Assembly (NCBI GenBank): GCA_964199315.1
Contig: OZ116698.1
Coordinates: 44,392,001-44,456,000, forward strand
Direction: 5' to 3'
DNA from: Orbicella franksi
Taxonomy: Eukaryota
DNA length: 64,000 nt
Shown: piece after piece, positions 48,885 to 53,700 of the stretch
Position numbering within the stretch: position 1 is the first letter of the stretch
Layout of the letters: every line of letters starts with the position of its first letter
The notes under the pieces: generated by a model
What the model saw: the letters and a program-made list of their open reading frames with translations, nothing else
The model's database searches: none
Told to the model about the DNA's origin: nothing
Made by a program: the position numbers and the translations under genes

Positions 48885-50366
48885 TCCAATGTAAACAGTG
48901 ATGACTCAAATGACTATATGTTCAGTCCGCGCGAAATTTCGCTATAAAGATCTATAAAACAGTGACGTTTGAAAACTATTTTTAAATTATTGGAGAAACA
49001 TAAACTAAAGATAACATTTCAGGAAAATTTTGTAAGAATTTTACTGAAACAATTATATTATTCTCTCTCGATTATTATTTAAAGTATGGAGTGTTTCTGC
49101 GACCTTTGGGTTAATAGTTGCCCACGCAATTAAATGTCATGTTCTAAAATACAAATGTTCGAGACCGCCTTGTATTAGCTTTTTAGAATATAAAAATTTC
49201 CAAAGGCAAATATCAGCACATTAGCTAAAGACATACTCTCTCTATCATCTAAATGTTTCCGCGACAGCACTGCATGACAGGAGACTAGACTGATGCTCAG
49301 AGCTTTTGAATTTTGCATTGAGATGTCGTTCCTTGAGTCAACTAAGTTAAGTTGAGTGTTTAACTAACATTCGTTCAGCTATTGTCTCCCAAATACGTAA
49401 AAAAAAAAGTCAAGACTGTCTGGCTTTTCCGGCTGGTCTTTGTTGTTTTTGAAATTCGTAACTTGCGTGTAAATGTTTCACAAAACCCGACTAACTTAGC
49501 ACAAATTTAGGCTGTAAACTGTTTACGTGAAGATATGAAGTTAAGTCTATTCAGTTAAGTTACCTTTTATGTCGAAGAGGTTTGTGAATTCCTCAGTTCA
49601 ACGTGTTCAAAACAAGCTATGTGGAAGAAGTGGTAAACGTTTGCAACCCTGCTGTACAATCAGTAACCACGTTCATTTCCGACTGAGAAATTGTCTTCAG
49701 AGATTACTCTATCCTCTCAGTCCGTGTAGATTAACAGTTTCTTTTGTACTTTCCAGTATATTTCCACGAATGTGAACAAGTCCTCTCTGAGCTCAATTTC
49801 CGGTTTCAACCAATGAGGTTTTCTATCGGTCTTTTCAGCTCGAGGAGACACACATGAACTTCAGTGTCTGTAAACTTTGCTGAAATCCTTGCTCCGTTTG
49901 GCTCACATAAAGAATATAAACGTTCAGCCCCACGAGTAATTCGTCATCTTTCGTTAGTCTTAATCGTTTGGCACAATTTTTCAGAAGTTGCTCGACATTC
50001 TGAGGAGATTTTGCGAGGTATCTCCGAAAGAAATTCTGACTCACTCACTGACACAAAAAATGTTTCATTCAACATGCTCACTGAACACCGCATCACTTGA
50101 CTTTGCCGCCTTTTTCCATAGTCATGTGATCAGACGCTTCGTTTACAAACGTTTAGTTTAAAACTGAAGGTAATCTACTCAGAATTTTACAAATTATTAA
50201 TTGAGGTAAAAACAGCTACTTTAATAGGCAAATTAGTGGCTCCTGATTTAGTATTCAGATATTAAAGTATCAGTAGTACTGACAGTTCCTAAATTTTTTC
50301 TCATGCTCAGTTTGTAAATTGACAATAAAGTTGACAGTTACTTGTGATAATACATTGTTCGTGGCT

Positions 50367-50414
50367 AGTCTTACGCAGCTCGTTTCGTCGCGGCCAAGGG
50401 ACTCATCAGAGACC
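50367..50414 (-). ncRNA. Type I hammerhead ribozyme, second complete copy (one stem II mismatch)
   Basis: Reverse complement reads GGUCU CUGAUGA GUCCC-uuggcc-GCGAC GAAA CG-agcug-CGUA|AGACU. Predicted cleavage at 50372/50371. Confidence 0.88.
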
Positions 50415-50667
50415 TTTCTGCTTGGCAAACTCGTTGGGCATCGCGCCCAAAGTCCCGTTCGCTAACAAAATGATGACAGCAATCTCGCCTTATATCGCAT
50501 AAGGATTCCCGACCGCACAAATTCACGAGTGAAAATTGACAATAAAGTTGACAGTTACTTGTGATAATACACTGTTCGTGGCTAGTCTTACGCAGCTCGT
50601 TTCGTCCCGGCCAAGGTTAGCGAACAGGACTTTGGACGCGATGCCCAACGAGTTTGCCAAGCAGAAA

Positions 50668-50715
50668 GGTCTCTGATGAGTCCCTTGGCCGGGACGAAAC
50701 GAGCTGCGTAAGGCT
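50668..50715 (+). ncRNA. Type I hammerhead ribozyme, all core nucleotides intact
   Basis: GGUCU (stem I) CUGAUGA GUCCC-uuggcc-GGGAC (stem II) GAAA CG-agcug-CGU (stem III) A17 (50710) | AGGCU (stem I). Predicted cleavage after GUA at 50710/50711. Confidence 0.92.
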
Positions 50716-53700
50716 AGCCACGAACAATGTATTATCAGTTTGTAAAAGGTACTAAATTTCATTTTCTTGCTTTTTTCCTCACTGAAGGAGAGAAAGGCCA
50801 TATTTTAATAACGAATACCTTCTGCATGAGCGTGCGATTCAAAAATTTTCCGTATCGTATTTATCTTATATTCGAGTCTTTCAGATCGCGTATGAAGTAG
50901 TCTAGTCTGTGTGTATCGCGGCACGACTGAAAACTTTGTAATGCTAATTACTGCAAAATCACAACCAGCTTTGCAACAGTACTTCGAGCTCTTTCAAAAC
51001 GTTAGGTCGTTCAGTTATTTTCGAACGGTCGAAGTTCTGACATTTATATACACGTCTTGCAAAGGCTCTTTAGAAAAGGTTTCTTTATTACTCTGTTAAC
51101 TCCCTCCTTCATCGTCATTTTCCTTGCTAGTTTCGTCATTTTACACAAATTGTCTGATTTCGACTGGTTTTTTTTCCCGCCAATCGATGAAATGTTTCCC
51201 GGATTAAGGCCCAATATTCTATTCACAGTATATGACCTTGGGTACTAGCAAGGCTCCTATTTGAATCTAGTACTCCGAGCCTTAGAAACATCTCTGCACG
51301 GGGTACAAATATTGGATGGTCTGCAGGCTTAAGCTCCGTATTTCGAAAGCTTATTACAACTAATCGAATCTTTCTTTAGAAACACTTCTACAATGAACAC
51401 TGCTATATGCCATCGCAGAGATAAGGACATATAAATTTTCAGTAAAATAACAATGTATTCTTTACGTTTTTACGAAAACGTACCTTGCAATGTACTCGAT
51501 TAATTCTCAAAACATTTCATTGAAAATTATTTATAATACATGCACATATTCGGCCTAAATAATCGACATATTTCAGTTGTTTCCTGCAAGTTACATAATG
51601 TCTGTTCCATTTTATAAACTTGGCTGTTCGATCTATGGAATACTTCATTACTGTAACACTGACTATAAGCCAGCGATATATCTACTGAAATCATTAAGGG
51701 CAACCTCAGTACAGCATTCATGCAATTGATATTACGTAGCGCATAGCAGCCGATGTCGGTTACTAAGGGAAGTAGCTACAGAGCCATTTTGTTTAGTTTC
51801 TGGGAAGGGGAAGATGTATATATTAAGAAATAATCATTTTTTTTTTCTGTGTGCATGAATCTTTTTGTTCTAATTGTTTTCAAAAGCAGATATTATGGTT
51901 TAAATTTCTCGAAATGTGCAACACATGACTAACTTTGAAAGTTGGTTTTTAAAATACGCATGTAAGCGATCTCCTACGGTTTGCAAACCTCTTATCTTCG
52001 CTAATTATTTATAATTTAGCCTTAAACGGCTTGCCTTTTTTTAAGCTGCCACCAAAACAAGCTTAAAAGGATAAGTAAAGGTCTTTAAGTGATCTAAAAA
52101 AGCTTCACGCGCCTCAAAAGGAATGTTGGAGGTTAATTACAATGAAATGTCTCACCTCTGAGGGCGAATATACGCTCTTGAGAAGCCCTCGACAAATGGA
52201 TTAAAACGATGTCGTCTTAAGTGAACAGAGAAGAGATAAAACCGTTCGTATAGCAAGACTAAACGTTTTCAATGCCGATAACGTTTCACTTGGCATTGCA
52301 ACACGAAAATGACAATAGGGTGAAGTGATGAATAATTTAGCACTTTTTCGATTCTCTGCAGGGTGTAAATACAAAGAGGGCTTGGAATAAAACGTCGAAG
52401 TGTAAAGCACAAATATCTTATTGTTTATCAGATCTTCATCTCAGAGAACTTATTTTGAATAAGATAAAAGGCGAAGTGGTTCTTTCCGGAAACGCCTATG
52501 ACTCGGCTTATGGGGACTACGTGATGCGAGGAATCCAAAATCCCTGAGTGCTAAACACTCAAAGATATGTTCTGAATACTTATCTCCGTTTGACAGCTTT
52601 ACCACATTGAACTACATCTTATAAACAGAATAGTCATTATGTAAACCAGTTGTCTAGGTTCTCATTCTCCCTGCTCTACTCACAGCGCGACTTGTGGGTC
52701 TGTAACAACAAAGGCTTTCTCGGTATTTCTGCCCTGTGGAGAGCACCTAGTGAGCTACCGGTTTTAGGCAAAGGGCGAGGTGCTTAAAATGAACAATTAA
52801 AATAGATTTTTCCACGCAGTGGCCTGCTACAAATTCTTCCGTAAAAAGATATGCCAATCATAAGAGAATTAAGAAAGCATTTAAATTATGAACCGAGCAA
52901 AACAGAGACATCTAAATTGATAATGGAGATTTCACACTAGTTCTCTCTTGACAGGAGCCGAGGAGTATCAATGAAAGCAACGATAATAGAAATAAGTTTA
53001 AGCTTAAATGATTGTTGTTTAACTTTACACGGAGAACTTCAAATAAATCATTTACACTGCACAATGCCCTCACGTCTCTCTTCTGTTACAATAAATAGTA
53101 GAAACTCTGGGATGTTGTCGAACATGGACAAAATAATTGAATATAGTCCTTAGTTATGTAAGCGCAAGAAGTGCAAATGCGTACTGCGTTTGAGAATGAC
53201 TTGAAAGGAATTGTTTACCAATTTTTCTACGGTCGTCTAGGTGTACATGAGGATTCGTCGACGAATTGCTTAGCTATGGCGGCCAATGTGACTCTGAAAT
53301 CGGGGATTCAAGCGTTCAAACGAATTCCAGTTGGATTGCTAAAGCTAATTATAAGATTCATGTGAAAGGTTGTCTAGAAATGATATAGATTGAAGGCATT
53401 TAAGAATTATTGTAGTGATAGAAGCGTAAAATTGAACGTTGAACACTTTATGAAACCTCAGTCTATTAGACAGTTGAAGCCGCCTTCTATCTTAGTTTCA
53501 ATCAATTACATGTGGAGTATTCACATAAGAAAAATAAACCAATGTATCTTTTATTTCGTACAAGCCGTACCATGGCCAATATGTCAGTATTCAACCCTTT
53601 TAAAATATGCCAAAACTCCCGTCTGACAAAACGGATGTTCAAAGTAAAATTGTTTGAGTTTGTACGAGAAAGATCATTAGTTCACGCAGTTCTACGTCAA

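Follow-up and report, generated by a model that had tools for sequence, protein, structure and literature searches.

Head-to-head insertions of a 217-nt hammerhead retrozyme in the coral Orbicella franksi: target-primed reverse transcription and a probable Penelope-like mobiliser

Retrozymes are represented in the coral Orbicella franksi by a dispersed family with a 217-nucleotide (nt) unit, one copy of which is described here together with its relatives. The window is a stretch of 64,000 nt of contig OZ116698.1 (assembly GCA_964199315.1, positions 44,392,001 to 44,456,000 of the forward strand), and the copy lies at 50307-50746. This block is a single sharp-edged insertion, in which 416 nt (50319-50734) stand inside a perfect 12-bp target-site duplication (TSD). 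Taken as a whole, the best explanation, which we consider probable, is that 50319-50734 arose when a non-autonomous retrozyme, non-coding and with a type I hammerhead in its 217-nt unit, was retrotransposed in a single event. The insertions of the family are products of target-primed reverse transcription, and the composite ones are twin-primed. The RNA that was copied had been religated or never cut at the ribozyme site. The enzyme involved is likely to be the reverse transcriptase plus GIY-YIG endonuclease of a Penelope-like element.

Position 1 of the unit is the base that directly follows the predicted ribozyme cut (AGACUAGCC...), and position 217 is the A of GUA. The features of the insertion are as follows.

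50307-50318, no strand: left copy of the TSD, TCAGTTTGTAAA, 12 bp, a perfect direct repeat with 100% identical copies.
50319-50616, minus strand: arm A, 298 nt of retrozyme or 1.37 units, with its RNA-sense 3' end toward the left TSD.
50334-50358, minus strand: hairpin predicted by folding, unit positions 14-38, between the two start zones of complementary DNA (cDNA) synthesis.
50367-50414, minus strand: complete type I hammerhead of arm A, from the strict structural scan, with the predicted cut between 50372 and 50371.
50584-50616, minus strand: second pass through the cleavage site (between 50589 and 50588), carrying the 3' part of the hammerhead only.
50617-50734, plus strand: arm B, 118 nt, unit positions 124-217 plus 1-24, with its RNA-sense 3' end toward the right TSD.
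50668-50715, plus strand: complete type I hammerhead of arm B, from the strict structural scan and at 18.1 bits to Hammerhead_3, with the predicted cut between 50710 and 50711.
50735-50746, no strand: right copy of the TSD, TCAGTTTGTAAA, 12 bp, a perfect direct repeat.

Read in the RNA sense, arm A consists of unit positions 190-217 (50616-50589), a full unit 1-217 (50588-50372), and positions 1-53 (50371-50319). The predicted cleavage sites on the minus strand (GUA/AGACU, the slash marking the cut) follow 50589 and 50372. These sites are 217 nt apart, and the copies at 50313-50399 and 50530-50616 are 97% identical, which confirms the 217-nt spacing given in an initial annotation of the window made from its letters. 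The same annotation described a minus-strand tract of 301 nt (50316-50616). The tract is real, but its length is 298 nt (50319-50616), as three of the nucleotides also belong to the TSD. The tract does cross the cleavage site twice and end elsewhere, as was claimed, since it finishes in ...GUCAA(UUU), 53-56 nt past the site. The second pass has no CUGAUGA box because arm A is truncated on its 5' side at unit position 190. Two features of the block go beyond that first description, namely the 118-nt inverted arm and the perfect 12-bp TSD.

Arm B is an inverted repeat of 50345-50466 (span 122 nt, 97%). The two arms are joined head to head, so that their 5' ends meet centrally, and a single nucleotide (50616) is ambiguous between them. 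The arms are joined at different unit positions (190 and 123), and their junction is therefore no palindrome. Snap-back synthesis is thereby ruled out, and a hairpin cDNA was rejected as the source of the inverted arm. Microhomology is found at both outer ends. The last three nucleotides (AAA) of the left TSD can pair with UUU at unit positions 54-56, where arm A starts, and the first three (TCA) of the right TSD are identical to unit positions 25-27, where arm B starts. In comparison with sister copies, the window copy has 5 rare letters in 416 nt. Its internal repeats differ from each other solely at rare or private letters, and were therefore probably identical when inserted. A metagenome contig (L151) matches 50637-52500 of the window at 99.2%, so the insertion is present in another sample.

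The ribozyme motif of the unit reads GGUCU-CUGAUGA-GUCCC(UUGGCC)GGGAC-GAA-ACG(AGCUG)CGU-A/AGACU. In the type I criterion used here, the core consists of CUGANGA, GAAA, and NUH, helices II and III are closed by loops, and helix I is open. The motif has CUGAUGA, GAAA, and GUA, with the cut predicted after GUA. All type I core nucleotides and the G10.1-C11.1 pair are present. Helix I has 5 bp (GGUCU with AGACU, including one G-U pair), helix II has 5 bp with the loop UUGGCC, and helix III has 3 bp with the loop AGCUG. Judged by this predicted structure, the motif is a type I hammerhead, and self-cleavage is predicted. The complete type I hammerhead of the initial annotation is thus borne out by the structural scan, with core and three helices, on both strands. 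When about 0.34 Mb of fetched DNA was scanned with the same strict rules, 46 motifs were found, all within the 217-nt family and none outside it. The two hammerheads of the window are not equal. That of arm A has a C-C mismatch in helix II, caused by a plus-strand G at 50390 that is private to the locus. This letter occurs in none of 88 other copies, and all RNA-library reads have C on the plus strand. Helix II is intact in arm B, and the one G-U pair in helix I there reflects a rare change at unit position 3 (A to G). A diverged copy (L054, minus strand, near position 1433 of the reverse strand) has A-U in place of G10.1-C11.1 (GAAUCCC...GGGGAU) with the pairing kept; as the only such case, it may be fortuitous.

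The database search is less favorable to a ribozyme. At the gathering score, Rfam does not call a hammerhead in the window. The best match, to Hammerhead_3, reaches 18.1 bits against a cut-off of 48.5, for the window and for intact sister copies alike. Because the Rfam matches are all below threshold, the ribozyme call rests on the manual structural scan. The motif might accordingly be an inactive relic within a repeat resembling a short interspersed nuclear element (SINE), whose 3' end is set in some other way, for example by a UUUU terminator at unit positions 54-57. The low Rfam scores, the lack of read ends at the cleavage site, and the coincidence of one 3'-end zone (zone A, defined below) with the T4 run are as expected from such a relic. 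The core and three helices are complete, however, and the 43-nt motif is conserved exactly in 14 copies and with at most three mismatches in 88. Furthermore, internal T4 runs are kept in copies of several units, some arms end at unit positions 66-75, and many end in the other zone, zone B. We regard the relic as very unlikely. An element transcribed by RNA polymerase III, suggested by the T4 terminator at 54-57 and strings resembling A and B boxes, was also considered and was rejected on the same grounds of retained internal T4 runs and 3' ends elsewhere. The only match in the window that reaches the Rfam gathering score is a tRNA gene at 19055-19127 on the minus strand (41.8 bits).

The copy in the window has many relatives. 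The genome searched is an assembly of 497 Mb. The 298-nt tract as a query gave 66 scored matches among 301 candidates. A 23-mer from the 3' region occurs at 106 sites (control, 0), and the 43-nt hammerhead at the 88 sites mentioned above, again with 0 in the control. The copy number in the genome is at least 100-300. Tandem arrays reach 5-7 units; the one at C2:11436983-11438210 has 5.6 units, and another at C11:20014251-20015169 has 4.5. The search for copy number and tandem arrays proposed with the initial annotation has therefore given a positive answer. For a census, 83 loci were fetched and 72 independent insertions were analysed. The inserts are 69-1247 nt long, and 49 of the 72 are longer than one unit, a count biased to long copies, as the first 22 loci were picked by score. 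The unit has 47% GC and is non-coding; in a trimer, stretches free of stops reach 82 amino acids at most. A further set of 85 coral-holobiont metagenome contigs carries the exact ribozyme and is thus a ribozyme-anchored sample.

The ends of the insertions are the key to how they arose. RNA-sense 3' ends that face outward (n = 92) concentrate in two places, with 62 at unit positions 46-60 (zone A) and 19 at 21-40 (zone B). When short terminal pieces are read by eye, zone B reaches down to about unit position 6 (6-36). The 5' ends are scattered round the unit. As a side observation, 5' ends of arms are depleted at about unit positions 52-105, a region strongly paired with 170-213 in the minimum free energy fold, and enriched at 1-50 and 111-217; this may reflect pausing of the reverse transcriptase or RNA structure. 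TSDs across the family are 7-15 bp long, and there is no long terminal repeat (LTR), primer binding site, or polypurine tract. Exact flanking repeats of at least 9 bp are found at 28% of insertions against 1.7% of mismatched flank pairs, and those of at least 12 bp at 15% against 0.2%. The 3' junctions have 2-6 nt of microhomology, in which the first TSD nucleotides usually match the next letters of the element. Neither a poly(A) nor a microsatellite tail is present at 3' junctions with a well-defined TSD. Composites joined head to head make up 20 of the 72 insertions, and none is joined tail to tail. A zone-A end is paired with a zone-B end in 13 of these 20 by automatic assignment, or in 15 with two short pieces assigned by eye. 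In these paired composites the arm ends are offset by 17-32 nt, with a mean of 26. The same builds recur in the 85 metagenome contigs, where the two zones contribute about equal numbers of ends. The family insertions are thus products of target-primed reverse transcription, twin-primed in the composites. The short non-coding unit, the type I hammerhead, the dispersed copies flanked by TSDs, and the arrays also support the retrozyme assignment made at the outset.

One of the composites, L105, has arms of 317 and 178 nt in a 13-bp TSD. Elsewhere in the genome its flanks abut with an overlap of 12 nt and no insert. The flanks of this empty site are only 74-93% identical, so it is treated as a probable paralogue. 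The empty site establishes the limits of the inserted unit and gives no evidence of polymorphism. Presence/absence polymorphism as a sign of recent activity was accordingly not obtained, since the L105 site is a probable paralogue and the insertion at L097 is present in both cases compared. The initial annotation called the insertion young. By its five rare letters the window copy is indeed among the less diverged copies of the family, but the family itself is moderately old, with copies 86-98% alike and heavy decay at CpG sites.

A later rearrangement of a monomer insertion at the DNA level, through local duplication and inversion, would offer another origin for the composite build, in which case its junctions would carry no information on the RNA. 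Arrays can resize at the DNA level. One of them has 5 full units here, 7 in contig L086, and 3 in contig L169, with flanks 98-99.75% identical. For the composites, rearrangement is hardly credible. The TSD brackets the whole composite, the head-to-head build occurs at 20 of 72 independent loci and never in the tail-to-tail form, and the end zones are incompatible with random rearrangement. In addition, the L105 composite is missing as a whole from the matching site. About 90 sister copies also speak against the one-off DNA rearrangement without other genomic copies that the initial annotation named as part of its refutation.

Two of the repeated loci deserve separate mention. In the array just cited (L002, C2:11436945-11438230), which is flanked by a TSD, alternate units are 96-97% alike and neighbours 90-94%. 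This suggests that it changes by two-unit steps, which could be due to a dimeric template or to unequal crossing-over; short-read mis-assembly is also possible. At L031 (C1:22525001-22535000, with pattern matches to about C1:22542729), a macro-tandem of 3781 bp has at least 5 units that are 99.97% identical. Each macro-unit contains an old 208-nt retrozyme copy (86-93% to the window unit) and open reading frames (ORFs) of 212 and 148 amino acids. It looks like a recent segmental tandem amplification that is not tied to retrozyme mobility.

The position of the start zones bears directly on the template. Both lie 6-60 nt on the 3' side of the ribozyme cut site. Every longer insertion therefore crosses this site, and a doubly cleaved linear monomer gives at most about 60 nt. 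The 217/1 junction is seamless in 84 of 89 cases, the same as at control positions, and this speaks against template jumping from the end of one cleaved monomer to the next. Nor do 5' ends accumulate at the cut site (5 of 93 observed, 3.9 expected). From the crossing, the seamless junction, and the lack of a pile-up it follows that the template had an intact cut site, and hence was religated or never cut there. That the template was not a cleaved monomer had been argued for the window copy in the initial annotation, and holds family-wide.

An intact site can be provided by a circle or by a longer RNA. We lean, by a modest degree, toward a religated 217-nt circular RNA. With the same machinery, the template may instead have been linear RNA primed internally, either an uncleaved multimer or the read-through product of an array or copy; we rate this as unlikely, though a serious candidate. 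Source arrays for such RNAs exist, as the examples of 5.6 units on C2 and 4.5 units on C11 show, and units of old arrays differ by 3-10% in an alternating pattern. Cleavage may also be slow, given a helix III of only 3 bp. Divergence at non-CpG positions can be read in both directions. Repeats within one insertion differ by 0.061, which is above the 0.043 obtained as twice the rate of private letters, in favor of a multimer, and yet below the 0.083 of random family pairs, which disfavors it. Unit-to-unit heterogeneity as a test of circle against multimer is blurred by CpG decay and homoplasy. In the window copy, the repeats differ at rare letters only, which disfavors the multimer.

Arm lengths add a further point. 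In the genome sample, the less biased of the two, there is an excess just past one turn (1, 7, and 1 arms in adjacent 48-nt bins, p = 0.035). Arms of one turn from zones A and B share their length and not their stop position (p = 0.73 vs p = 0.008). This shared length fits a reverse transcriptase that stalls at its own start on a 217-nt circle, and disfavors a multimer. In 22 independent metagenome insertions the length excess did not recur. For another coral retrozyme family, circular RNAs have been proven (PMC7229834).

RNA data give the circle no help, and several of the following results weigh against it. Sequence of the family is present in RNA libraries of at least 8 studies. Four RNA runs were mapped, with only 13 and 82 raw reads from poly(A) libraries. 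Of these poly(A) reads, 87-92% continue into unrelated sequence, so that most are embedded in longer transcripts, in line with a read-through template. No pile-up of read ends at the cut site is seen in the poly(A) reads at depths of 13 and 82. The ratio of family to flank depth in RNA-library contigs is about 20-600, within the range of the genomic copy number. One RNA-library contig has a joint that goes back 218, which tandem arrays would give as well. Neither a dedicated nor a circular transcript of the 217-nt family was seen in the RNA data. The circular fold has -56.0 kcal/mol, compared with -53.4 +/- 4.4 kcal/mol for dinucleotide shuffles (z = -0.6). A stable rod-like circle is not claimed, as circular and linear folds are no more stable than those of shuffles.

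The insertion in the window is accounted for by the following series of steps. At the target, a staggered cut produced two 3' ends, both with the 12-nt sequence found in duplicate today. Each 3' end annealed by 3 nt to the element RNA and primed reverse transcription. Synthesis from the first primer began at about unit positions 53-56 and covered 298 nt, or 1.37 turns of the unit; from the second it began at about 24-27 and covered 118 nt. Head-to-head joining of the two cDNAs followed. The RNA copied in this way therefore had its ribozyme site intact, both starts lying just 3' of the cut.

The enzyme for these steps is likely to come from a Penelope-like element. Insertions of Penelope-like elements show strong 5' truncation, frequent partial tandems, an adjacent inverted copy truncated at its 5' end, and a one-sided tail of 30-40 bp, which according to the authors does not occur in target-primed reverse transcription of long interspersed nuclear elements (LINEs) (PMC8557442). 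The 217-nt family has all four, with truncation, partial tandems, the inverted copy, and a one-sided tail of about 26 nt. It is because the family reproduces these hallmarks that a Penelope-like mobiliser is proposed. Type I hammerheads, moreover, are characteristic of Penelope-like terminal repeats (PMC4209133). Suitable endonuclease domains are available in the genome. A Pfam profile search for GIY-YIG gave 1018 candidates, and all 150 that were scored are above the cut-off; some domains lie in open frames of 754-1034 amino acids. By coordinates only, at least 9 pairs of GIY-YIG matches within 4 kb are in minus/plus order and none in plus/minus order, which is the same head-to-head topology. 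Examples at distances of 0.6-3.3 kb are C12:21462095(-)/21463804(+), C11:12793324(-)/12794883(+), and C10:19483146(-)/19484925(+).

Other results count against a Penelope-like partner. The tail offset of 17-32 nt falls a little below the 30-40 bp in the literature. No GIY-YIG or Penelope-like ORF was found in the window, at 84 genome loci, or in 85 metagenome contigs. No autonomous element with a shared 3' end was found at the loci around the copies, the GIY-YIG matches being known by coordinates only. In addition, reverse transcriptases of the LINE type are also present in this coral (RVT_1, E = 5.5e-22). The same event on the same template might therefore have been carried out by a LINE reverse transcriptase through classical twin priming of the L1 type, with no Penelope-like element taking part. 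Head-to-head inversion with a TSD is reportedly expected from L1 twin priming too, and the presence of the LINE-type enzyme and the lack of an identified Penelope-like partner agree with such an origin. The 3' junctions, however, are free of poly(A) and microsatellite tails, and the second priming is confined to about unit positions 6-36, which yields a regular one-sided tail of about 26 nt as in Penelope-like elements (PMC8557442). The typical occurrence of type I hammerheads in Penelope-like terminal repeats (PMC4209133) points the same way. We judge the LINE route improbable. At one locus (L101), an RVT_1 ORF with a YADD box (311-1027, plus strand) is interrupted by a 113-nt retrozyme fragment (476-588, minus strand). 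This reverse transcriptase was rejected as a partner, as the LINE copy had simply been struck by the insertion.

Twin priming as reported for L1 (Ostertag and Kazazian 2001) starts cDNA from each end of a staggered cut, which gives an inverted 5' part and a direct 3' part in one TSD. The insertions described here are unlike that product in three respects. They have no poly(A), their arms overlap in sequence, as is possible on a circle or multimer, and their second start is in a narrow zone.

Non-LTR retrozymes are already known from a coral. The units of Acropora millepora, about 225 and 245 bp in length, cleave themselves and build up as circles; these were proposed to be reverse-transcribed to tandem cDNA, probably with the help of Penelope-like elements (Cervera and de la Pena 2020, PMC7229834). 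The 217-nt family shares with it a coral host, a non-coding unit of about 200-250 nt with less than 50% GC, a type I hammerhead, dimers to multimers as well as dispersed copies, a TSD of more than 4 bp, and the proposed cycle of self-cleavage, ligation to a circle, tandem cDNA, and integration. It also has the size, GC content, tandem arrangement, lack of LTRs, and TSDs of metazoan non-LTR retrozymes, which are defined by a tandem unit of about 170-400 nt, less than 50% GC, and a TSD of more than 4 bp when present. The sequence is unrelated to the Acropora clone, and the ribozyme differs from that of the clone in having loop 2 UUGGCC, a cut after GUA, and a helix III of 3 bp. Unlike published retrozyme circles, the predicted circle of the 217-nt unit is not unusually stable. 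The hammerhead of the Acropora clone is itself present in this genome, at 132 sites with at most three mismatches (control, 0), in 242-bp tandems of up to at least 12 units. Arrays of this type are found, for example, at C8:18934558-18937242, C3:9980387-9981148, and C2:29385583-29386343. Since the 217-nt unit differs from the clone and the hammerhead of the clone is present as well, the 217-nt family is a second retrozyme family in the same host. The suggestion of the initial annotation that the family may be undescribed is plausible, to the extent that the unit differs from the published Acropora clone. By its sequence the family appears to be new and set apart from that clone, while its kind is already known.

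Penelope-like insertions (Craig, Yushenova, Rodriguez and Arkhipova 2021, PMC8557442) also share with the family a hammerhead in the repeated part and tandems resembling pseudo-LTRs. The family differs from these elements in having no ORF, a length of only 217 nt, and an extension of about 17-32 nt in place of 30-40 bp. In Xenopus, retrozymes have been related to pseudo-LTRs of Penelope-like elements, and animal retrozymes have been viewed as non-autonomous Penelope-like sequences (Li, Clavereau and Pollet 2026, 10.64898/2026.07.22.740005). That preprint builds on co-occurrence and sequence relatedness in vertebrates, with other animals not examined and limited life-cycle evidence (10.64898/2026.07.22.740005). 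The thesis is the same as ours, and the evidence here is the anatomy of insertion junctions in a cnidarian. Plant LTR retrozymes are likewise non-autonomous and hammerhead-bearing, with circular RNA intermediates there. They carry type III hammerheads in their LTRs, a primer binding site and a polypurine tract, have a 4-bp TSD and a length of 600-1000 nt, and are mobilised by Gypsy elements (Cervera et al. 2016, PMC4918200).

The link between retrozymes and Penelope-like elements has so far come from co-occurrence and, in frogs, from sequence similarity. In this coral, dozens of clean insertions bounded by TSDs show where cDNA synthesis starts, that the ribozyme site of the template is always intact, that two primers are frequently used, and that the products resemble Penelope-like insertions. 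Across the family, the junctions support the view that a Penelope-like element mobilises the retrozyme, with RNA intact at the ribozyme site as the template. What is added is the junction anatomy in a cnidarian and no new kind of element; current views are not overturned, and a published hypothesis becomes testable with a 217-nt RNA. We tentatively suggest that the family may be the first junction-level record of retrozyme integration in an invertebrate, in which only religated or never-cut RNA would be copied, from two fixed start zones (6-36 and 46-60), in the twin-primed manner with a one-sided tail that has hitherto been reported for Penelope-like elements alone. There is no in vitro system for the integration of Penelope-like elements (PMC8557442). 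If the suggestion is true, Penelope-like enzymology could be studied on a 217-nt template, and the cycle of ribozyme cleavage and ligation would be a licensing step for transposition.

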